Of a DNA stretch of 64,000 nt, positions 7,223-58,300 are shown piece by piece (positions within the stretch are counted from its first letter, which is position 1; every line of letters starts with the position of its first letter). The stretch is taken from contig NC_043001.1 in the NCBI RefSeq assembly GCF_006345805.1, positions 88,598,001-88,662,000 on the forward strand. Reading direction: 5' to 3'. This DNA comes from Octopus sinensis. Taxonomy: Eukaryota. Below the pieces are notes generated by a model. It was not told where the DNA came from, searched no databases, and worked only from the letters and a program-made list of their open reading frames with translations. The position numbers were made by a program, and so were the translations under genes.

Positions 7223-10200
7223 CTCATGAGCTGTGGCCATGCTGGAGCACCGCCATTTGGTGTTGCTACATGGTTTTACTTCACGAAAGCTTTTTAGCAA
7301 CTGCCATTTGGTGCATGAGAGAGTTCGATGCAGCTGCCCTCATCTGCATCTCCTGCCGTGAAGTTGGTTCATCTGGGATACCTGACAGGAAGAGATCCAG
7401 TTTCATTTTAAAGACATCTGCATCCACCCCATGCAGGTCTCTTAGGTTCTTCGGGAGGATATTGAAGAGCATGGGCCTCGGAAGCCCAGGCTATCACAGT
7501 ATCTTGTCCTACATCTTGATGGCAAATTTGGAGTCCTAGGCACCACGCAGTGGCGCCCAGTTCTGGCATTTGTGTAACTCTCGATGCCAAAGTTTGGGAC
7601 AAGTCTCTCCAGGATCTTCCAGATGTATATTATGGCATATCTTTCTCGCCTACGCTCCAAGGAATATAGTTTTGATCTCTTGAGTCTTTCCCAGTAGCTT
7701 ATATTCTGCATAGAGGCTATCTTCTTCGTGTCGCTACGTTGGATCGCCTCAAGTTCTGTGATCAACTTGACACTGGATGGTGACCATAACTGAGAGCAAT
7801 AATCAAAGTGGCTTAGGACAAGTGTCCTCCAGAGGACCATCATGGTTTCTTGTTCTTTTGTTCTAAAGGTTCTGAGAATCCATCCGGCCAGTCGTCTACA
7901 TTTCATTGCCAATTTAGCAACATGTACACGAAAGGTTGCGTCATCACTCATGTCACGCACTGATTGTGCCTCTGGGATTGCAATTCCTCCGGGTCCAGTG
8001 TATTCATTGGATATTGCATTTAGTTTTGCATGCTGATAGTATAAAGCTTGAAACTTTTCAGCATTGAACTGCATGCTATTCTTTTCAGCCCACTTGTATA
8101 TTTTGTCCAGCTCACATTGCAGGCGTTTAGTGTCCTCAGGGTTCTGTATTGCCTGTGAAACTTTTGTATCATCTGCATAACTTGTGATCGTGGCTCTCTG
8201 CGTGGCTGAGGGCATGTTTGAGAGGGCCATTATGAACAGTAGTGGTCCCAAAACAGTGCCCTGCGGAACACCGCTCACTATTTGCGTGTTAATGGAAGTG
8301 GCCCCATTGGCTACTACCACCTGACTTCTATCTTTCAGAAAGTCATGAAGCCATTCTCCCAGTTTTCCAACTATGTTGAGATCACACAGTTTGTGACATA
8401 TCATTCCATGATCGACTTTATCAAAGGCCTTTGCAAAGTCGAGATATATGACTTCCACATTTGAGTGGTTGAGCAGTCGTTTCAGCACCCAGTCATAGTG
8501 TTGTAGGAGCTGAGTTAAGCAGCTTCTCCCTGGTCGGAAACCATGTTGGGTGTCAGGCAGCAAGTCATTTTCTTCAAGGAAGGTGATCAGTTTCCTTCTG
8601 ACTATTCGTTCCATGACCTTGCTGATGTGTGAGGTCAGAGAGATAGGTCTGTAGTTCTTGGCCTCCGCTCTGCTACCTCCTTTATGAATAGGGCATATTT
8701 TACCTTCCTTCAGTTTTCTTGGAAGTTTGCCAGCTGCAAGGAAGCTCTGAAAGAGGAACTGCAGTGGTCTTGCTAGGACTCTCTTACATACTTTTAGGAG
8801 GATTGCCGGGAATCCATCGGGGCCAGTAGCTGAGTCTGTTTTCATTTCATCTATAGCCTTTATTACATCGTCTTCCTTTATATCGATGTAATTTATCGTC
8901 GCCGCCTCTGATTTTATATCTGCAGTGGTAAAGAAGTCAGTTGGATTGGTGATTTGGAAATGCCCAAGGGGTGGAGTGAAAACACTCTTGAATTGCTCAT
9001 TCAGTATTTCACTTACCCTCATTTGTTTTCCTGTGAGTGTGCCATCCTTTTCAAGGGGTGGCCCTATCCTACAGTGCACCGTAGCTGTTTCTTTGGCATA
9101 CCTGTAGAAAGCTCTGGGGTTAGATTTTATGTTGTCTATAGCCCAGGCTTCTTTGTCTGCTCTTTCCTTTTCATGGGAGAGTTGCAGACATTTTTCAATT
9201 TCCAACAGTTTTATTTTCAGGCGGGACTTTTCACTTCTTTCAATTTGTTTGTTTAGGCAATTTGAAATTTTTGTACGTCGTCTCATTAAAATTTTCCTCT
9301 CTCTGGGGATTTTGTTCTTGTGTACAGTGGCCTTTCTCTCTGGGACACATTTGTAGCATATGGCTTGCATTACAGACATGAATTGTTGAAGTTTCACGTC
9401 GATGTCTGGCGAGGAGAGACATTCAGGCCAGTTTTGTTTTAGGATCTCTTTCTCAATTTGTTTCCAGTTTGCCTTATGGAAGTTCAAGCTGGAAAGATTC
9501 TGAGGGTTTCTTGTAGGCTGCATGTCCATGCTTTCCTTTGACCCGTACATGGTCAGCTCTACCATGTTGTGATCTGAGAGTAGTGTCGGTGTCACTTTCA
9601 TATTATGGATGTGATCCATATTATTTGTGAAGCAGAGATCCAGTGTGTTACCTGCCCTGGTTGGTTGGAGTATTACTTGCTCCATGTACAGGGTGTTGAT
9701 GAGGTTCAGGAGGGACCTCGCCTGTCCTCGTTCACATCTTGTCATTCCTGGGAGAGAAAGGCCCTCGGGCCATCTGACATTGGGTAGATTGAAGTCTCCC
9801 ATAAGAAGTACACTTATGTGTTGTTCTAATGTGATTAGAACTTCTATTTTTATAAGGCAGTCTTCAAACTTGCCTACATGGCTTGGGGCATCTGGAGGGC
9901 GATATGTAGCACACACAAATACATCAAGTTGCCTTATATGTACAATTAGTGTGTCACACACCGAGTTTGAGTATGACAAAAGGACCTGGGGTGTGAGGTC
10001 CTCACGGATGTACATAGCAACTCCTCCATGACTCCTTTCTTTTCTGTCGGTCCGTAGTACAACATACTGTGGTATGTGTAATTCCGCATCTGCTATGTCC
10101 GGTTTCAGGTGCGTTTCCGTAAGTGCTATGCATAAGGCTTGATTGCATGCAACAAAGTCTCTCAAGAACGGGATTTTTGTCCTGTTACTGAGTGTTTGCA

Positions 10201-10330
10201 GTCCTCTGATGTTCAGTAGGAGCATCGAGGTGAGGTGTATGTTGTTGCCGGCGGTATCCACCTTGGGTCTGTTTGCTGTGGTGGTCTTGTATATTGTGGG
10301 TAGTCCCATCTGCGAGCTTGGGTTTGAATA
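7223..10330 (-). mobile_element. CR1-clade LINE, ORF2 nearly complete, 5'-truncated (no ORF1), antisense in a CaMKII intron
   Basis: APE endonuclease motifs (NIRGL, LTETHL, GGVAMY, YRPP, GDFNLP, LDLCFTN, SDHN) and RT motifs (GPDG, NYRPISLTS, QHGFRPGRSC, LDFAKAFDKVDH, GVPQGTVLGPLLF, YADD). Confidence 0.95.
7281..10309 (-). pseudogene. CR1 ORF2 (APE endonuclease + reverse transcriptase) with a C-terminal frameshift
   Basis: Open for 955 codons from ATG 10309 to 7442. The true C-terminus (LFNILPKNLRDLHG...) continues in another frame to 7281 after an apparent 1-nt loss near 7471. VRDMSDD lacks the usual LGV-containing residues. Confidence 0.85.
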
Positions 10331-10332
10331 TA

Positions 10333-10374
<42 letters not shown>

Positions 10375-10385
10375 CACACACCCAC

Positions 10386-10665
10386 CTCCTCAACTTACGA
10401 CAATCTGCACTTACGACCACAAAAAATAAATAAATTTAAAAAATCAATTTTTGGACGTTGGGCAGCTGTGCATACAATAATTATCGCAGCATCTGGCAAC
10501 ATAGCTTCCCTCAGACCCAGACATTCTCTGCCTACCACTGTCTCTCAGTCACTTTCAAGTATGAATGAAAATAGTGTTGAATAATACAAATCGGACTTAT
10601 GATCAGATTGACTTACGACCTGTCAGTCGGAACAGAACTCAGTCATAAGTCAAGGAGAAACTGTA
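10386..10665. mobile_element. Tigger/pogo-like MITE
   Basis: Left ctcctcaacttacgac versus the reverse complement of right gtcataagtcaaggag (13/16). The right end is ...aaactgTA, and there are internal acttacga repeats. Confidence 0.65.
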
Positions 10666-15586: not shown

Positions 15587-15709
15587 TATCCTTCACCAGA
15601 ATGGGACACTGTGACCCCAGAGGCAAAGAATCTCATCAACAGTATGCTGACTGTGAACCCTGCCAAAAGGATCACCGCATCTGAGGCTCTGAAACATCCT
15701 TGGATCTGT
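15587..15709 (+). CDS. CaMKII: CaMKII exon, end of kinase domain: [41 protein letters not shown]
   Basis: ttctag acceptor, 123 nt, phase 0-0, GTAAGT donor. The peptide is diagnostic for CaMKII. Confidence 0.97.
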
Positions 15710-18777: not shown

Positions 18778-18861
18778 CAACGAGAGCGTGTTGCTGCTGC
18801 TGTACACCGACAAGAAACTGTAGATTGTTTGAAGAAATTCAATGCCAGGAGAAAACTAAAA
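18778..18861 (+). CDS. CaMKII: CaMKII autoinhibitory exon with the T286-equivalent: [28 protein letters not shown]
   Basis: tccacag acceptor, 84 nt, phase 0-0, GTAAGT donor. The Thr codon ACT is at 18817-18819. Confidence 0.97.
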
Positions 18862-24352: not shown

Positions 24353-24395
24353 GGTGTTATTCTTACCACTATGCTGGCAACCAGAAACTTCTCCA
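24353..24395 (+). CDS. CaMKII: CaMKII CaM-binding exon: GVILTTMLATRNFS + 1 nt
   Basis: Pyrimidine tract plus ttgcag, 43 nt, GTAAGT donor. Ends in phase 1, as canonical CaMKII genes do before the variable linker. Confidence 0.95.
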
Positions 24396-25204: not shown

Positions 25205-25213
25205 TAAACAAAG
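25205..25213 (+). CDS. CaMKII: Candidate 9-nt CaMKII linker microexon (I-N-K)
   Basis: tag|TAAACAAAG|GTAAGT, phase 1-1. About 70 nt AG-free upstream, with TGCATG, a CTAAT branch-like motif and a TGC-containing U tract. Confidence 0.5.
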
Positions 25214-37760: not shown

Positions 37761-38382
37761 TTGCAAGACATGAACTCTCAACAATGTTGGGGTGCAGTAT
37801 TAATTGTTGAGAGACTGAAGTTAAATTGAAGGACAGGATCAGGTGTCTAACTGTACAGGAGTTGCGTAGCTACACATCACTAGAAAGGGAGAAAGGATGG
37901 GGGAGATGAAATGCCAGGGTGTCCCCTCAATGTGCAAGAAGGTGGATAAAGAGAATAGGGAGAGAGAATCAAGAACCAAGGATAGCTGCATTGGTAGGTT
38001 TATGAGAGTGACAGATAGTAGAGATTAGAATGGAAGAGAATTTGGTGAATGGCGAGCATCGGTGAAAGCATGGTCAGTGGTGAATCTCAGTATAGGTGAG
38101 GGTAAAAGAAACAGGAATGGGTCAGAGAGAAGCAGATGAATTAGGGGCAATACATAAAAGGGAGAGAGCTACAGTACAATAAAAGAGTTGATGTGAAATA
38201 GGAAGATCAGGTGAGGCATAGTGAGATGTATGTACATATATGTGCATGTTTATAAATTTCTCTATGTATGTATTATAAGGAGTGATGTAGCCAAGTCATT
38301 AGAACACCAGATAGATAGCCTTCTTGTAATCCTCATGCTAAGTTCAATACCTGGTGTAATCAATTTTACCTTTTGTGGAGTT

Positions 38383-38386
<4 letters not shown>

Positions 38387-38448
<62 letters not shown>

Positions 38449-38449
38449 T
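38387..38449. repeat. (CT)n microsatellite
   Basis: Direct reading. Confidence 0.95.
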
Positions 38450-38699
38450 CAAATTGGCTGTGTCAGTCAGTCCTGGAAAGGAGAATGTAATTATATGACT
38501 ACATAAAATGTTGAGAGCCTAGGTTAAGATTTATACTTCTGTCCATGTAAGTGTCCCTGCATGCACATATCTCTACATATATGTATATGCAGTTTCATAA
38601 ACATTTGTTTGTGTGTACAAGCAAGAAAGTTTATATACAAAGATTTTGCATATTCAAAGTTATGCAAAATTCAGCTTTCCACCTTTATCTGACAGCAGG

Positions 38700-39030
38700 T
38701 TGTAGAAAATGTGAACAGTAGATTTGGCTAAGCAGGTGCTGTATTCCAGCATATGCACCAAATCTTGCCAATAATAAGTATCTGTACTGAATAAATTGTG
38801 CAATGGTTTTGCTAATTTCTCCATATTTCAATGGAAAAGGACAATGTGCCAGCCAATAAGCAAACAGGGAATGCATTGACAGGGCCACTGTGAGATGTTA
38901 AATGAAAGAGCCAAAACAACCAGTACTGGACATGCTAGGAAGATTTCAGATGTGTGAGGACCGGTTAGAAGATTGTGGAAGAACTGCAGCAGATTGACCA
39001 TACTAGGAGAAGCCTGATGTATTATGAATT
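38700..39030 (+). mobile_element. Highly decayed non-LTR RT C-terminal fragment (RTE-like)
   Basis: RFG*AGAVFQHMHQIL..SI and KTTSTGHARKISDV resemble the RIGKAxAVF..L.KIW and ETW....LD.F motifs of RTE RTs. Confidence 0.4.
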
Positions 39031-39159
39031 TCAATGTAGGAGGATCTAAATTTAAGTCAAATGTCTTCGTAATATGTATATAGTTATATGTGAGTGCAAC
39101 GTACATATATATATGTTAATATATGTATGTATTTGTGTGTGTATGTACATTATTATTAA

Positions 39160-39570
39160 GGTACAGCTGTGACTGTGGTTAAGAGTTCCCTTCCCAATCA
39201 TGTGGCTTTGAATTCAATCCCATTGCATGGTACTTTGGGCATGGATCTTCTGCTATAGCCCCAAGCCAATCAAGGCTTTGTGAGTAGATGTGGCAGACGG
39301 AAACTGAAAGAAGTGAACCACATGTGTGTTTGTATGTGTGAGTGTGTGTGTGCATATCTTTATCTGTGTTTATTTACATTTGCACTTCTTCAAAAGCTGT
39401 AAGCAGTGATGTCATTTCTCCATGTGTGCTGCCTTTGCACCTTCAAATAAGAGATTGTTTCCTTGAAAATCCTCTAAGGGCTAGCAACAGGAAGAGCATC
39501 CAGCTATAAAACATTAACTCCATATTATGTTCATCTCACACATACAAGCATGGAAAAACAGATGTAAAAA
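39160..39570 (+). mobile_element. tRNA-derived SINE with an RTE-type tail
   Basis: gtgactgtggttaagag...ttcaatcccattgcatggtactttgggc...gacggaaactgaaagaag...ggaagagcatccagcta. Confidence 0.7.
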
Positions 39571-40701
39571 TAAACAAAGAAAAAATATATATGAATGCAT
39601 ATCATTTCCTCAATTCCTCTATCCTTATCTGCAACATTGATTCAGATTTTGAATCTCAATGTGTCAATGTGACATTTCTTCTTTCATCAAGAATACCTTC
39701 AATTGGTTGTGGACTCTACACTCTACCATGCTCAGGTCATCAACTACTCTATCCCACCCCTACTCTCAATGTGCACCTACAGACCAGATTCCGTTTCCTT
39801 CCCTTTCTACTTGTCCACTCTTCTATTGTATAACACATGTATCCATAACTTCTAAATACTACTCTCTGACTCTTACAACTGCTCTGATCTTTCTTACACC
39901 ACTTCTTTAAGACAGATTCAAACCTTGGCAAGACCTCAGCTAATTATAAGTCCCATGGCACTTGTCCATACACAGTCAAGCACTTTTAAATGCATTCACC
40001 TGTTATTTCTACAGTTATCACTGCCCTTAAGTCACAGTACCACCTCACACAAAGCTTCTGCTGCACATCTGTCAGTGTGATATACTGCATCATCTACAAT
40101 CTTTAGGGTACTTTTTACACAAGCAAATCAAACCATTGCTTTGCTATTCGCTTTTGCACACACATTCAGTTTCCTACTATATATCTCAGGTCAACTCATA
40201 ACCACACACTTCAGTACAACAGACCAATCTATGATCCACTTATCAGTCTATGACATCTCTACACACAACGGAGCCACAAAGTCAAAGAAATATGAAAGGA
40301 ACAATTCTTATTCAAACTTAGAACCCTGGCACTGGTGGGTTTGTATGAATCCCTTATCCATATATAACCTGCCCACTGAACTGCCTTTCTACCATAATCT
40401 TACCACCAATCCTACTCCTAATTTTACATACCCATCAACTTTAGAAATAAGTCTCCTTTCTTTCCCCTTTCACTCTCTTCCTTTCTTCCCTTGTCTATTT
40501 CTATTCCCTTCTCTGACTACCTACACCTTGTACTCTTCCCCCCCCCCACCATCTATTTTGCACTTAAATCTCCCCATCTGACATCTCTTTATCCTATCCT
40601 TATCATTACACACTGAGTTCACAATCATGAAGCATCTCTGATGACACCTTTAATGAAACAACTGTGGCCATGTTGTGAGAGTATGAATAAATTGATATTA
40701 T

Positions 40702-40744
<43 letters not shown>

Positions 40745-41296
40745 GTGTGGTGTCCTTGTGCCTGGATTTATGGTTGAATAGGTAACTGTATAGTAATGTA
40801 ACCAATTTTCTATTGAACACTCTGTACTTTGTTATGCCATGTTTGTTTAGTGTAGTGTGTGTGAAAATAAACACAATGTTTATCGACCTTTAAGCTGAGT
40901 TTCTTTCACAAGCATGTTCAGATTGTGATTTAAAATCATTCTAGCTGTTAATCAGTAGTCTTATCTTTACTATTGTCTCTCTCACTCATTAGTTCATACC
41001 TCTTATTAGTTATCCTCATACTTTACAGCATCTTAAAACATTAATTTTGATACATTTCACCTTTTGTATTAGATTCACAGTCCTCAAGTGGCCAACCTCA
41101 TCATTATGAAACCTCTCATGCCATTTTCCCTATCAAAATGCAAAATATGTGAAGCTTTGAGACTTCATATAGCACCCTTAGCCATTGTATACTTCAGCAC
41201 TACTCTTAGTTACCAGTTTGCAACCTTGTGGGAACATATATCTCTATTCTAGTCTATTTTCTCTTAAATCTTGTTTATTTATGTCATTGTTGATAG

Positions 41297-42222
41297 ACTC
41301 TAGTGAAAGTAGTTTGGAAGATTTGAATGAACAAAGAACATTGGACAAATATGGAGAAGATCAAGCACCAGCTCGGCCTCAACCTTCCGCTCCTCCATTA
41401 AATTACTCGGATACAGCTTCAACACCATCTCCCAGTTTGGTTTCCAGGCCACATCGTAGAGCTCCAATGAGAGCAAAACCAATTGATCTACCTGAGGAAT
41501 CACCTACGTTCCATACCACCCCTCCATATCAGCCAGAGCAAACTTCAAAGAAAACAGGCATGAACAAACTTCACCGTCCCTTTGAAGTACCTGTTTTTAA
41601 TGACAGAGGCATTGGTTTGCCCAAATTGCAACCAGTAACTATGGTAGCTAAACCAAATGCCCAGTTTTCTCCACATCGCTTCAAAACAAGTTCTGATGTC
41701 CAAATCACTAATTATGCTTCCAACTTACCTTTCTTAAGATCAACACCAAGTCATAGTAAGCTAGGATTTAAAGATCTACATGAACTTCAACCTCAGTATT
41801 CCTATGATCAAATGAAATATTTCCCAGGTGGCCAAAATCAAAGACAACACTACATGCAATCTCCTCAATATTCACCTGTGAACCCTAAGACTCGTTTTGA
41901 ACAGTTTTATGATAGATCCTCTGAGTATGCTGTTCTTCATTCAGTACCTATGCCACAGCCAGCAAGTATATATGGTAGTATTTCAATGCCATCTTTGTGT
42001 GATATTGACCCTTTGGTGCCAGTGTCATATGTCAGGGATCCCAGATATGCACATACTCAGTCCCACTTTTTAAACAGAAAACACAATACTCATTTAGCAC
42101 CTGGTTGCAATCAAATGTCAGCATCTGACTACAATCTCCACAACATCTCAGATAATGTTGGTTTTGAAAACCTGTTCTCAACACCTATGTATGGAGCACC
42201 TCAAGCACATCGGAGATTTTAA
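41297..42222 (+). CDS. Large S/P/Q/Y-rich coding exon (308 aa to stop), probable alternative CaMKII linker or terminal exon
   Basis: 926 nt open reading frame in repeat-free, GC-elevated sequence. The acceptor ttgatag|AC opens in phase 1, matching exon 24353-24395. An internal phase-1 donor ATA|GTAAGC lies after 41755. Membership in CaMKII is inferred. Confidence 0.7.
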
Positions 42223-42999
42223 CTCTGATACACTGATTTCTTATCGCTTGCTATCATCATCCTCACAACTAGCTTCTTTCTTCTGACTGATGTTCAAATG
42301 GTACAGTTAATCCTCAATGAATAGAAAGAGACAGCAGACCTGCTTTTGGTTCCCAATTGGAAGTTAGTGTTCTAATGATGCTAGAAGAGGCATCAAAGTC
42401 TCAACGTTGAATTTTTTCTTATCCTTACTAAGCAAAGCTTCAGTGAAAGATTACAGAACCAGTAGCATATCAGACAAAATATCTGTGTAGTGTTCAGTTT
42501 TGCCTTTTGATTTAATCAACTCTATGCAATGAGGGTTGATTAAATCAAACACACTATCCTCCAGTATTTCTGCTATTGTGGCAAAATTAGAAATTATTAT
42601 TAGGATTATCTACTATAGAATCAAAGAAGCTACCAAGGAGCTGAGAAAGATACCAGAATCTAAAAGAACTAATGACCATCTGTGTTAACAGACCTCTGTT
42701 CAGTAAAGTTCACAAAATACCTGAAATCTTAGAATTCTCTTCTATCTATATCATCATAACATATTTTTAAACTTTATCCATGAGCTGATTCAGTATCATT
42801 GTTTCAGTTCTCAAAGAGGGAAAAACTATTTTTAGAAAAGTAGAAACAGTGTAGTTAAAATATGTTCCATCTCTAAAGGTGGGGTTAATAGTCCAAAAAA
42901 TTATGATCATATTAACTATAACTCAACTCTGTCACTTAAACTTTGGATGGTATGCAGTCTTATTTCAGTCCCTGATAAACATCATCATCATTATTGTTC

Positions 43000-43005
<6 letters not shown>

Positions 43006-43046
<41 letters not shown>

Positions 43047-43084
43047 CATTATTACTATTACTATTATTATTATTATTATTATTA
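43006..43084. repeat. (TAT)n microsatellite
   Basis: Direct reading. Confidence 0.95.
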
Positions 43085-43172
43085 ATTTTGGATGTTCATC
43101 AGGGCATCTATTTTGATGTCTAAAAAGTGGCATGTTAAGAACTCTGTCAGTTTTTCTGTTCTGTTGTTGCAG

Positions 43173-43226
43173 GTCTCAAATATGCCTTACATACAACTTC
43201 ATACAGTGCTCTGATATATCTCCATA
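43173..43226 (+). CDS. Candidate 54-nt phase 1-1 cassette exon (G/S-LKYALHTTSYSALIYLH)
   Basis: tttttctgttctgttgttgcag acceptor, ATA|GTAACA donor, frame-preserving. No homology recognised. Confidence 0.25.
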
Positions 43227-43680
43227 GTAACAAGATCAATACTTATGTAGAATTAGAATTCATTCAACAACTATTTATCCATTTTCAAAGACAACCATTT
43301 AAAAATAAAAATCACACTCCCACATGCACACACTAAAATAATGACTATAACAAGCTTGTATCCATACTTGAGTTAATTTATGTTGCTGTTGTCATTCTTC
43401 TAGTTAACAATGAATGCATTACCTGAGGAATAAAATCAACAAACTGATTTATAGTCTTGTGTAACTATGGATGCAGAGTTGTCATAAAAATTCAGGATGA
43501 GCCCCCATTGTTGCACTCTTTTATCCATCCTTTTATATTCTTGTTATATCCTAACAAGAACCTAGTTATTAACCTTGTGTAACCATTTATAAGTTCTTTA
43601 TAATTGAAGTTCTTTTCTATTAATCATAGTTGCAGTGTTTTTCTTTTTTTTTTATATTGGGTTTGTTTGCTTTTAAACAG

Positions 43681-43727
43681 AATATGGCACAAGCTTAATT
43701 ACCCAAGATTTATGGGAGACTGTTTAG
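43681..43727 (+). CDS. Candidate terminal exon (K/E-YGTSLITQDLWETV-stop)
   Basis: A long U tract plus ttttaaacag acceptor. The phase-1 reading ends at TAG 43725-43727, and AATAAA plus a GU-rich element lie about 240 nt downstream. Confidence 0.35.
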
Positions 43728-43966
43728 AAGTTTGAATTTAACCACTACATCCTATACTACACTTACATACGCATGTGGAAATATATTAATATATGGCATG
43801 TTTGGCTAAATACATGACAAAGTCTATTGACCAGTTTAATGTTCAGCTCATCTGATTGTCTGATGTCTCTCACCAGGTCAAAATTGTAAACAGCTCAACA
43901 TTAAAGTGGTTCATTGACTTTCCAGTTATGCATTCTAAAACATATGCAAAAAAGAATTTCATTCCT

Positions 43967-43997
43967 AATAAATCGTATTTTTGTGTTTGTGCGTGTA
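43967..43997 (+). terminator. Candidate polyadenylation signal with a downstream GU-rich element
   Basis: AATAAA at 43967-43972 followed by tttttgtgtttgtgcgtgt. Confidence 0.35.
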
Positions 43998-45089
43998 TTT
44001 ACATACATATATATATATGCTTGCATATCAATCTATCTAATCTATCCACACATACCCATATACATACACACACAAATATAAAAATAGAAATTTTTGCAAA
44101 TGTTTACACTTGCAGAGAGAGAACAATTAACAACAGAGTTAAGTGAGATTGAACTCATATCTCATGGTTTATCTACAGAGTATTCTTCACTATTCATTCT
44201 CTTCCTAAATTTATACTTATGTATTTACATTTCAAAATCATTCATCAACAACTTTCAGTTTGGTTTCCTTAATATGAGCCATGGGAAAAGGAAATATTTT
44301 GCATTTGACTGTGGTTCTCTTTACAAATATTTAGTGTGGAGATAGCTTCTCGTCCACAAAGATGTACTGAAACAAATTGGTGAGGCATTTATGAATTGAC
44401 TTAGATGACATATGAGTGTGTGTGTGTGGTCAGTCCCACCAACCACTACTGTTTATCATTATACCTTTCTTTCTCCATCACTCTGTCCCTCTCTTTTATT
44501 ATGACATCTGTGTAACAAAGGAAAGCCTCGGAAATGTGTTCAATACTTACTACTCCTTTGTGGATTATCATAATTTTCTCACCCTCATTTTGCAGTTCAT
44601 TGACATCTCCCACTCACTCAGTCACTCTCTCTTACCATTGCTGATCTTTGCTGCTACCCATAAGTTGCTCTCTCACTTATGACCACCCATTTTTATTGCT
44701 ATCCTTCAATCCTTCATTCTCCTTTATTCTATGTCATCCCCTGTCACTCTTTGTTGACATGCATCAATCTCCCTCTGTTTATCACATTGTCTCTTCTTAA
44801 CATGGAGCTACCTGTCATGGTTTTCCATTACTCAATCACCTTGTTCTTACCACTCTGTCTCCTTTCATCACTCATTCTTATCCTCTTTTTTCTATTTACA
44901 CTCTTGGTCATGTTTGCTCTGAGCAAACAGAGATAACTTGTCTTGCAAGAGACAAAGGAACCTCTTTAGTGCTGATTCCCTGATAAAATATATCCAGTAC
45001 ACTCTGTAAAGTGCTTGGCAAATGAACAGAGATAATGTAGAGTGGAGAGGGCTCTTTGAACTTTCTGGAAAGCTGACAACCACCCTAGT

Positions 45090-45280
45090 GCTGGTACCAT
45101 GTGAAAATGAATGCAGTGCATTCTGGAAAGTGATTGGTGTTGAAAAGGGCATCCAGCCACAGAAACTGAATAAGCAAGGTGTGGTCCTGTAACCCATCTA
45201 GAAGTGTACCTCCAAATTAGAACTGATATGGATCATGACAACCCATCAGATCTATGTCAGTTTGAAAATGTTGATGATAT
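45090..45280 (+). mobile_element. RTE-type 3' tail
   Basis: gtgattggtgttgaaaagggcatccagccacagaaac...aaaatgttgatgat. Confidence 0.6.
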
Positions 45281-46136
45281 ATACACACATCTATGGTGGA
45301 TATTGTTGGTAGAGGTGGGAAACTCATGGTAAACCATGGGAAACTATGATTGTCACAGCTCCATTTTCCGTCCCTGTAATGTCATGACTGGGCTTGCAAA
45401 TGGATTTATCATAGTGGGTATAACCAAGAGATTTTGTATTTTTATACAAAATCTCTTGGTTTTCCTGCTTGGCTTCTCCTTAAATTGTTCTCTTTCTCGC
45501 ATACTTGTGTATTCATTGTATATTATTCTTACTTAGCATTTTGATACACACAAAGACATACATACTTGCACATGTGCACACACATGTGTGTATAATATAT
45601 ATATATATGTAAGAGAATGACTGTGAAAAAATATTCAAGGGTGTTTGCTGCATGAAAATTTGTGAGTAAAGTGGACACTAGCATCCTTGATATAGTAAGC
45701 CAAGAAATTTTAATTAATCAAAATTACAATCTCAGCCATGAGAATGATTGTTTTCCAAATGGCTAATTTCGGTCATAAAATGCCAGAGGAGAACAAGCAA
45801 TGAATCTTAATTAATTAAAATTTTAATTAGATATGAAAAGGAATGGGAAGTGAACCTGATATAATATATATATATATATAACACAAAAGAAATTACTATA
45901 TATGTAAAATATGTATGTATATATACACTCACATGCACAGGTGTTAAATCCTCTTTAAATAATATATAAACTGGAAGATTACAATTTTTAACTCACAAAC
46001 TATACAAGGTGTGTATAATTACTATTTGCTTCCTGAAACAAACCCATTTGTACAAAAAGGTAAATTAATCTGTAAACATAGTTTTTATATGGATTTATAT
46101 TCTTCTTTTCATTTTCTACAATTGTTTGTACTCCTT

Positions 46137-47900: not shown

Positions 47901-47909
47901 GGGTGAAAG
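47901..47909 (+). CDS. CaMKII: Candidate 9-nt CaMKII linker microexon (G-V-K)
   Basis: aag|GGGTGAAAG|GTTAGT. Phase 1-1 gives (G/R)VK, like the canonical DGVKES linker. The A-run before the acceptor is atypical. Confidence 0.4.
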
Positions 47910-55309: not shown

Positions 55310-58300
55310 TGTACATGTATATTTCATATGCGTGTATGTGTGGATATATATATATATTTCAACTGTTTCAAGTTCTGATTCACACTGTGTTGTATATAAA
55401 ATATTGTTTAATTAATGACATTCCAACGAAAGCAAATGCAGAAAAATTAAGATGTCTACAACTGTGGTCACATAATTTATGACGGCTGTATATTTATGGT
55501 CACTACTGTATGCGATTGATTGGGGAAACAATTAGGGTACATCTTTTTTTATGTGTGGCCAACAAACCATAAGACCTTCTATCAGGAAACTCCCTCCCTC
55601 TTCTTTGCACTCATCATAAAGGGCTTACATTATTTCACCCCACCTAGGCTTTGTTCTATTTAAATTTCATTTCTACTGATTCATGGTCTGTTATGCATAA
55701 AACACACACACAAATGTATTTATTTGTATTGGATATATGTGCAAGCACTTATATACATGCATACATGTTTATAATTTAAGGCATATACATATAAAGATAC
55801 AATTGTGTGTGTACACATATATCCATCTATCTGTTTATATATGTGTATAATGTTGGTAGTTCAGCCATCAGATTTGATGATGACCTAGCAACTTCAAAAA
55901 AAAAAAAAAACAGGTAAAAAGAAAAAGAGAATGAATGAAAAGGTTATAAAATGATACCTATAGTTATGTTCATCTATTGGTGATCATTGAGGACAACATT
56001 TCAGCCATATGGCACCTCAACAGAAGATGCAACCATGTGGGGAACAGAGAATTACACCTGCTTCCACTTACACTACAGCTTTTCTGTGTGTCTAGAGCTA
56101 AGGAAGTTGTGGGATTTTATCATGATAGATGTGTGATACCCCCACTGCTGCCATAAAAGGTCCACCATCAGTGGCTCTGAGAAGTTTCAACTATCACTAA
56201 TCAATGAAGACTGCAACTAACTACACAGCTTATCAACAAAGAATGCAGTCATAGAATGGGGGAAGGTGGGAAGGGTTGTTGGCAGAAAACCTTGACTGCT
56301 CCTCTTTACACAACACCTTCCTTGTACCTGAAACTAAGGATCTATGGTATTTCATTATTACAAATGTGCTGAGCACTCCAACCACTACCACGAGACCTCT
56401 TACTATGTATCAGTTTATTATGTACTATACATACTGAACTTGCTAGACACAAGTGCTAAACTAGCGCGTGACCGAATATAATGATCATTGGCAACTAAAC
56501 TGGCATTTGCACCAAGCTTGCTTGGTAAGAAAGATGACTTGTGATATCCTGCCGAATGAAAAGCAAGACTTGTCAAAGGCAAATGAATCTAAAGGAGGTA
56601 AAGGCTGTACAGTAATGTCTACATATATACATCAAATATTTGTGTGTATTTAGTAGCATGTTTTCATTTATTGACCAAATGAAGCATAAAAGAAATAAGT
56701 AACATTCATGGTTTTGAAGTTGGTGACCGCAGGCCTATAGGAGAAACTGTTGCAAGTGGTAACATACTATCATATTGGGTTAGAAGCCATGATGCAGGGC
56801 ATACAACTGGAATGATACTTTATAGCCTGGATATGCATCAAATTACACGGCTCTGTAAGGTTTGAAGATCCTTGTAGTCACTTTGTCAATCTACTACCTC
56901 ACATAAAAGTTCAGTTGTCTTGGTTTTATCTTAACCACTGAGCAAATTGTATAAGAATGAGAGAGTCTGATGGGCATGCAGCTCTTTCTCACTTTCAAAA
57001 GCATTGCACTAACCTAGTATTTGTGTCTAGTGAGGAAAACTGTGTGGTGCATGCATGCCCTCACACACATCATATTGAGTCAAATCTTGAGCTCTGTATA
57101 CTGATCAACTGATCAGTAGACTTTAGCTGTTCAGAGATGTCTGTTGACTCAGTTAATTTTCTTTTGTTTAATATCCACTTCTCACTGGAAATTTCCATCA
57201 CATACTCTTTCTCTCTCTCTGACCTGCATGCACACTCATACATACACAGACAGACACACACATGTCTACATCCTCACTTTTACCCCCTCTCTGTTGCTCT
57301 CTCTTTATATCTATGTGTCTACTGAAATTTCTCCCTTTCTTACACACTCTGTGTGTGTGTGTCTCTCTCTTTCTTGCTCTCTCACACATTGTCTTACTAG
57401 AGGTCTTCCTGTCTTATTAATTATATTATTGTTTACCTACCAACCTATTATCTATTTTGTGTGAGTGTCTATTTATCTCCACTTGTCCAACAACTAATCT
57501 CTCTACTTAAATGTGTCCCTCTCTGTCTCTTTCTTCTATCTGCCTCTCTCTCTTTATTCCCCACCACCAACCAACACCTATGAAACAAGTACTATATGAA
57601 GAATCTAGCTCTACCCATATTAACAAATTTCATAAGGCACCCCTCCTAGACTTTCTACCTATTCTACACCTATGCTGTTATGTTTCATCCCCTAGGGAGT
57701 ACACAACAGGTTAGTAACAATGGCCAGTCACAAGGAACACCACCTCCCACACCCAGCTTTACTGCTGCAGGTAATTATTCTATTCTCCTTTATATCTCTA
57801 CAACTAATACCCTACATTTGCACTTGTTTCTACCATCAATTACACCACCTTTACTAATAACAAATACTAAGGATAACTATGGAATCAGTTTGCTCTTTTG
57901 TATTTAGTTTGTTTGAAATATATATATATGAAGATTTTTGGTTGTTTTTTGTTGTGTTTATATTTACTCATGTTTTTATCAAAGAGTAACATTTTGATAA
58001 AAAGTGTAGTTCTGTATTACCTCTTGGTAAGTGGGATAAGAGATGTAAGCTATCATCATCACCATCATCATCATTGTCATTAGTGCTGTTGTTTATGTTT
58101 GAGTTTTTCCTGTAATGGCTGATATTGAACAGTAACCCTCTATATAATACACCTTCTCGCCATCTTATCAACTTTCATCATTCTAGGTCTCACCTATTTT
58201 CTTAATTTGAAGTCCTCTTTGGTCTTCATCTGTCACAAATTCTTTTCATGTCCACCTGGACTACATTTTCATCCACCCAGCATCCTCCAGTTACATTAAT

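Follow-up and report, generated by a model that had tools for sequence, protein, structure and literature searches.

The stretch of DNA described here, referred to as the window, comprises 64,000 nucleotides of the Octopus sinensis genome (NCBI RefSeq assembly GCF_006345805.1, contig NC_043001.1, positions 88,598,001 to 88,662,000 of the forward strand) and carries a series of exons of the animal's single CaMKII gene. Within it lies a giant exon, at 41297-42222 on the + strand, whose relation to the kinase is the subject of this analysis. The CaMKII exons were placed by tblastn with human and octopus CaMKII proteins, and all of them lie on the + strand and are bounded by canonical splice sites. 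The last kinase exon (15587-15709, YPSPEW...HPWIC) is in phase 0-0 and runs from tctAG/TAT to TGT/gtaagt. It is followed by the autoinhibitory exon (18778-18861, QRERV...RRKLK), in which the Thr286-equivalent lies and the calmodulin site begins, and by the calmodulin-site exon (24353-24395, GVILTTMLATRNFS), which encodes the end of the regulatory segment and closes with ...TTC TCC A before the gt, leaving a phase 1 end at the donor A/gtaagt. All the exons mapped in the window from 24395 onward are in phase 1-1. The first one is the 9-nt linker microexon I-N-K (25205-25213, TAAACAAAG), the donor of which is used by RefSeq isoform X11. An INK insert follows TRNFS in the CaMKII proteins of gastropods and bivalves as well, and the microexon is therefore old. 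Farther downstream are a second 9-nt linker microexon, GVK (47901-47909, GGGTGAAAG), which reads R-V-K when it comes after the exon ending at 24395, and the 75-nt linker cassette exon (G)STQQVSNNGQSQGTPPPTPSFTAA (57696-57770, STQQ..FTAA), a 100% tblastn match to isoform X39. The hub exons and the remaining linker exons (GRSLVAKKNDGIKESTDSSATLEDEDTK and others) were not found by tblastn within the window.

The giant exon is placed in the long intron between the INK and GVK microexons. Its acceptor is a T-rich tract ending in an AG at 41295-41296, and its two first bases, from 41297 on, finish a codon whose first base is the upstream G, which sets the exon in phase 1. The donors at 24395 and 25213 are both in phase 1, so either of them reads in frame into 41297. 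From there 308 codons lead to a TAA stop at 42220-42222, giving a product that begins with (D)SSESSLEDLNEQ, that is (D)SSESSLED, and ends with AHRRF. The locus therefore presents two traits of an alternative last exon: the 3' splice site agrees in phase with the preceding exons and leads to an in-frame stop, and more exons of the same gene are located 3' of it. Since the CaMKII linker exons continue downstream, the giant exon occupies the position of an internal terminal exon of the variable-linker region. Its polypyrimidine tract contains a fraction of 0.63 pyrimidines, a value within the range of the alternative microexons of the gene (0.58-0.68) and below that of the constitutive exons (0.79-0.89). 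After the first 12 nt of the exon (41297-41308) there is also a GTAGTT, read as AAA/gtagtt and in phase 1. A 12-nt 'DSSE' microexon splicing to the downstream linker exons is possible in principle, and it appears in no octopus isoform retrieved.

The whole stop-free run around the giant exon extends from 41182 to 42219 and comprises 346 codons, which makes it the second-longest open run of the window, after the open reading frame (ORF) of a long interspersed nuclear element (LINE) described below. In a test based on 200 block shuffles that kept the local base composition and scored the longest open run, the median was 133 codons, the 95th percentile 178 and the maximum 238, so that none of the shuffles reached the observed length. 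The open run is not a chance product of AT-rich DNA. Scans of the exon for tandem and inverted repeats found none of either, and the sole direct repeat inside it is a weak one of 18 nt. The sequence is single-copy both in the window and in the corresponding O. bimaculoides locus. Given this single copy and the lack of tandem and inverted repeats, a repeat or transposon origin was rejected. A preliminary description of this DNA, made from its letters, had reported a stop-free and repeat-free frame at 41297-42222, unlikely to arise by chance, behind an acceptor whose phase matched both named linker donors, and with a product starting with DSSESSLED and ending in RRF before the stop; all these points hold.

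The same description had called the product rich in S, P, Q and Y with many SP/TP sites. Indeed, the 308-residue tail contains 12.3% proline, 11.4% serine, 6.8% glutamine and 5.2% tyrosine, no tryptophan and two cysteines, and it includes nine SP/TP sites. The term low-complexity, however, does not suit it. The sequence entropy is 4.07 bits, and the lowest value in any window of 40 amino acids (aa) is 3.28, so the tail is compositionally biased and not truly low-complexity. A disordered state is predicted. The grand average of hydropathy is -0.89, the charge-hydropathy boundary classes the tail as disordered, and the AlphaFold2 model, built on a shallow alignment of three sequences, has a mean predicted local distance difference test score (pLDDT) of 42.6 with essentially no secondary structure. 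No Pfam family, the hub PF08332 included, matches the tail at E <= 10. The resemblance of DSSESSLED to the canonical ESTESS..TIED linker that had been suggested did not stand either. When the canonical linker exon ESTDSSATLEDED, whose DNA lies outside the window, was compared with the tail as protein, the local alignment score was 21, a value matched or beaten by 99% of shuffled tails, and descent of the giant exon from it was rejected.

A search of the tail by word index against 5.8 billion protein clusters matched two octopod clusters only, with three proteins therein. The first is XP_036358779.1 (A0A7E6ETW6) of O. sinensis, named 'CaMKII delta chain isoform X11', a 626-aa fusion of CaMKII and the tail. 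It reads ...NFSINKDSSESS, that is ...LKGVILTTMLATRNFS-INK-DSSESSLEDL...AHRRF, with ATRNFS directly before INK. Its tail is 100% identical to the translation of the window, its junction is exactly 25213>41297, and it is devoid of the hub. Its first 318 residues are 100% identical to those of hub-bearing octopus isoforms, which carry PF00069. The replacement of the hub by a disordered tail put forward in the preliminary description is in this way reproduced by X11 as far as the 25213 donor, the loss of the hub and the predicted disorder are concerned; the direct junction 24395>41297 is present in no isoform of the protein collection. The second protein, XP_052823880.1 (A0A0L8GXN8) of Octopus bimaculoides, has 313 aa, is 92% identical and is annotated as 'trithorax group protein osa-like'. 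It begins with MSLLIESSESS, and its start is the ATG that matches position 41281 of the window. In that species (locus CM046605.1:106645201-106666142) the 313-aa frame is modelled as a single-exon gene inside the CaMKII gene, whose product is a 615-aa protein with kinase and hub. An Osa/ARID1 identity of the O. bimaculoides product was discarded, as it has no ARID, no BAF250 region, zero Pfam families and no homologue outside the octopod cluster; the 'osa-like' name is an artefact of composition. The third protein, unnamed, has 313 aa, is 84-85% identical and is encoded on three Logan contigs (SRR11869384/90/91).

The fusion of CaMKII to the tail already exists, then, as a database prediction, although an undescribed one, since the searchable literature contained no mention of a hub-less octopus or cephalopod CaMKII or of these accessions. 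A nested gene starting at the ATG at 41281, which the preliminary description had named as the case that would overturn its view, is likewise an existing prediction in the sister species O. bimaculoides, and the O. sinensis RefSeq annotation instead fuses the exon to CaMKII. The two NCBI annotations contradict each other, and at least one of them is wrong, incomplete or in need of curation. The Logan contigs were dropped as transcript evidence. They follow the genome collinearly, without splicing, through the acceptor and for as much as some 650 nt on its 5' side, they are mutually identical, several contig ends lie in (TG)n or T17 runs, and no paper was found to cite them. These contigs may consist of genomic reads, and they were used in the comparisons only as a third octopod species. 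A cephalopod CaMKII cDNA present in Logan comes from another run.

The evolution of the exon was followed in an alignment of the window, the O. bimaculoides locus and the third octopod as given by the three Logan contigs. The 313-codon frame (942 nt) is equally long in the three octopods and closes at the same stop, with no indel and no internal stop. The flanks are much less stable. Against O. bimaculoides they contain 47 indel events in 7074 nt, which predicts 6.3 in the frame (probability of none, P = 0.002), and against the third species nine events in 861 nt, which predicts 9.8 (P = 5e-5; about 0.001 in a conditional test). In a neutral simulation that used the observed amount of change, about 92 substitutions on the three-species tree with 61% transitions, all three frames stayed free of stops in 3% of the runs (P = 0.03). 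A neighbouring open run of 166 codons (40081-40578, +) was rejected as a further exon, having 10 gap columns against O. bimaculoides. The absence of indels next to indel-rich flanks, the absence of stops and the lack of protection of this neighbouring run show that the reading frame of the giant exon is maintained in these three octopods. Searches outside the group found no relatives of the tail, neither among 1.84 billion representative proteins beyond the octopod cluster (HMMER profile search) nor in JGI metagenome and metatranscriptome contigs. The conservation in related species raised in the preliminary description is accordingly found within octopods, and the giant exon is a genuine octopod-restricted coding exon.

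The sequence of the tail, in turn, is barely constrained although the frame is kept. The amino-acid differences observed are near those expected under neutrality (48 vs 51.4+/-3.7, 24 vs 25.0 and 46 vs 52.5), that is, 0.4-1.7 standard deviations below the neutral expectation in a simulation with transition bias. Substitutions are about as frequent at codon position 2 as at position 3. The ratio of nonsynonymous to synonymous change (dN/dS, Nei-Gojobori), a measure also raised in the preliminary description, is 0.46-0.61 across the three-species comparisons. A nearly neutral pattern without third-position excess is what could be expected if the exon were an idle by-product, a chance-open intronic stretch that reaches gene models through occasional splicing or polyadenylation and yields no protein that matters. 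The divergence of the frame, 3.7%, slightly below the 4.8% of the surrounding intron, would agree with this explanation, as would the restriction of homologues to the octopod cluster and the absence of tail-bearing proteins from the transcript assemblies of three species mentioned below. Nevertheless, an open run that none of the 200 shuffles equalled, a tree of about 92 substitutions with no stop, a frame with no indel beside flanks with 9 to 47 of them, and a 313-codon length and stop position shared by three species make an idle by-product improbable. Conservation along the tail is patchy rather than uniform. The first 42 residues are invariant except for one and contain an invariant RPQPSAP (an RxxPxxP motif), and several C-terminal blocks are fixed. 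What selection appears to preserve is the length of the tail together with a few motifs, and not the sequence as such.

On balance, the exon at 41297-42222 is probably, though by no means securely, an alternative last exon that gives rise to a hub-less monomeric CaMKII with a disordered tail rich in proline and serine. Judged from the sequence, the attachment of the exon to CaMKII is plausible. In anatomy and phase the exon agrees with all the linker exons mapped, its weak pyrimidine tract resembles those of the alternative microexons, the AG and the tract preceding it are conserved, and RefSeq X11 uses the junction. The NCBI Gnomon pipeline is not known to issue additional isoforms unless alignments back the intron concerned, and this tips the balance towards the alternative-last-exon reading.

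Several observations weigh against it. The junction appears in the RefSeq model alone, and neither a spliced read, nor a cDNA, nor a peptide was obtained. In a collection of 15 billion proteins, the transcript assemblies of O. sinensis, O. bimaculoides and O. vulgaris contribute no protein with the tail. The tail is likewise missing from every entry recovered for O. vulgaris and from the CaMKII isoforms retrieved for O. bimaculoides. The RefSeq and 2015 annotations of O. bimaculoides both give a separate 313-aa protein. The only other contigs that bear the ORF, the three Logan assemblies, are unspliced and perhaps genomic. The signals found 3' of 42222 single out no poly(A) site: an ATTAAA at 42539 is not conserved, and although O. 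bimaculoides shares the AATAAA hexamers at 43304, 43429 and 43967, it shares most of the flank too. The nearly neutral amino-acid change and the equal rates at codon positions 2 and 3 belong to the same list. Finally, conservation over the 400 nt that precede the acceptor exceeds that of the ORF itself, which fits a promoter too.

The latter point concerns a conserved upstream block (40757-41296, +) within which lie the T-rich tract and, at 41295-41296, the AG. Between 40834 and 41233 it is 97-99% identical to O. bimaculoides and nearly indel-free, compared with 96.3% for the ORF and about 95% for the intron. The block could be an intronic regulator of splicing or polyadenylation, or the promoter and 5' untranslated region (UTR) of a nested transcript. 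An RNA-family explanation of the conserved region was rejected, as 38000-46000 gave no Rfam match. Read as a promoter and 5'UTR, the block would belong to a stand-alone nested gene, in which a transcript arising from 40757-41280 is translated from the ATG at 41281-41283 (+) into a 313-aa disordered protein unrelated to CaMKII activity, with the N-terminus (M)SLLIDSSESSLEDLNEQR (MSLLID...HRRF) and a splice-site look upstream that is incidental or rarely used. This is a somewhat unlikely alternative, with several elements in its favour. XP_052823880.1 and A0A0L8GXN8 correspond precisely to such a model, a separate gene called within the CaMKII locus by two independent O. bimaculoides annotations. 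The ATG and the residues MSLLI are invariant in the three species. Conservation in the preceding 400-540 nt equals or exceeds that of the ORF, as could be the case for a promoter or 5'UTR, and the three Logan contigs show no splice at the acceptor.

Other observations speak against the nested gene. The ATG sits inside the polypyrimidine tract and a conserved AG follows it 16 nt later, and conservation is to be expected there whether or not the ATG serves as a start. Its context is weak (T at -3 and T at +4), and 10 ATGs lie in the 525 nt upstream of it, an obstacle if the 5'UTR is long. The 'osa-like' name is baseless and no Pfam family matches the product, the O. sinensis RefSeq links the exon to CaMKII, and the agreement in phase with all the linker exons would have to be a 1-in-3 coincidence. 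As for the Logan contigs, their (TG)n or T17 ends and their identity across runs are what genomic assemblies would show. The alternative last exon and the nested gene are in any case not mutually exclusive. The strongly conserved intronic flank, together with the internal position, the in-frame stop and the weak, regulated-looking acceptor, would also suit a poison or regulatory exon, whose inclusion ends the CaMKII mRNA early and lowers the amount of hub-containing enzyme, the tail being irrelevant. Early stops and frameshifts would be tolerated in such an exon, and none is present in the three species, which renders this explanation very improbable.

If the giant exon is an alternative last exon of CaMKII, the weak 3' splice site at 41296/41297 would be joined to the INK donor at 25213, and translation would proceed through an intact kinase domain, a complete regulatory segment and 308 octopod-specific residues to the stop at 42220, so that the hub exons beyond the window would never be reached. 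The junction peptide after the K of INK would be DSSESSLEDLNEQR, which is fully tryptic. As far as the sequences go, the fusion retains residues 1-315, comprising the kinase domain, the Thr286-equivalent in HRQETVDC, the calmodulin site and the TT of Thr305/306. The last kinase exon in the window and the N-terminal identity of X11 identify a kinase domain of the CaMKII type, and both exons of the regulatory segment (18778-18861 and 24353-24395) lie upstream of the junction. The tail-bearing product contains no PF08332. Among the best matches listed for other CaMKII proteins, from molluscs and other invertebrates, all carry the PF08332 hub except a 319-aa annelid entry. Because PF08332 is missing, the 626-aa kinase would be unable to join the 12-14-mer holoenzyme. 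The tail would determine where the kinase is located, with the invariant stretches (the N-terminal 42 residues with RPQPSAP and several C-terminal blocks) as the likely docking sites. The use of the junction in vivo, the production of the protein and the behaviour of the fusion are what these sequence features would predict.

CaMKII relies on trans-autophosphorylation at Thr286, which a monomer does poorly. The fusion would be expected to behave like the laboratory 1-316 monomer, being activated by Ca2+/calmodulin, and poor in inter-subunit Thr286 autophosphorylation and in multivalent binding. The mode expected of it is that of the CaMKI and CaMKIV kinases, with one kinase and one autoinhibitory/calmodulin segment and no oligomers, although these belong to another gene family and are activated by the upstream kinase CaMKK. 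The engineered 1-316 monomers, which serve as hub-less controls, share the break point after the regulatory segment and the loss of the association domain, but they are artificial and end there, whereas octopus X11 would be natural and would bear 308 extra residues. The 1-316 construct is completely devoid of the association domain (PMC5882894), and CaMKII monomers of this type have been studied elsewhere (PMC12236485). In mammals, CaMKII splicing outside the linker is uncommon, the exceptions being alphaKAP and betaH (PMC5882894). The former arises from an internal promoter, loses the kinase and keeps the hub, in contrast to the octopus product, which would keep the kinase and have the whole hub replaced; CaMKII betaH/beta-eH lacks part of the hub, and the octopus product would lack all of it (PMC5882894). 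In common with alphaKAP and betaH, the octopus protein would be a CaMKII gene product that alters the assembly of the holoenzyme and not just the length of the linker.

The role of CaMKII in molecular memory is usually tied to its hub, on which depend the 12-14-mer assembly, inter-subunit autophosphorylation at Thr286, subunit exchange and multivalent docking, and its splicing normally changes the linker only. A natural and maintained hub-less isoform, if it exists, would offer a natural experiment on monomeric CaMKII in animals noted for complex learning, and would add a new form of alternative processing to those of this kinase. The locus would also be a clean case of a lineage-specific coding exon born in an intron, with its frame preserved and its sequence drifting. 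Were the exon a separate nested gene, it would encode an orphan octopod protein, and the O. sinensis isoform model would need correcting. A more ambitious proposal, which must be regarded as unlikely, is that octopods evolved a hub-less, monomeric and calmodulin-gated CaMKII de novo from an intron, with a disordered tail of 308 residues that directs the kinase to partners or condensates closed to the dodecameric enzyme. In that event RPQPSAP and the C-terminal blocks would do the docking, and the cephalopod nervous system would possess a second, holoenzyme-independent mode of CaMKII signalling.

Some further features surround the exon. On the 3' side, the presumed 3'UTR (42223-43003, +) carries a hairpin at 42506-42549 (+), 285 nt after the stop, with a perfect 18-bp stem and a folding energy of about -21 kcal/mol. 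In O. bimaculoides the hairpin persists with a G-U change, and the third octopod has a weaker form of it (-13.7); the hairpin is possibly a double-stranded RNA element related to editing or regulation. Two microsatellites lie near places at which the Logan contigs of the third octopod break: a (TTA)27 at 43004-43084, some 780 nt past the stop, and an (AC)11(AT)10 at 40702-40744, immediately ahead of the conserved block upstream of the acceptor. Directly upstream of the conserved block, the 166-codon run at 40081-40578 is stop-free and C/T-rich, with a GC skew of about -0.30, and is probably noncoding. The longest open run of the window is found at 7445-10435 on the - strand, antisense within a CaMKII intron. 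Its 997 codons encode an apurinic-type endonuclease and a reverse transcriptase, with Pfam matches to Exo_endo_phos, Exo_endo_phos_2 and RVT_1, and it is seemingly an intact non-LTR (long terminal repeat) retrotransposon of the LINE type.

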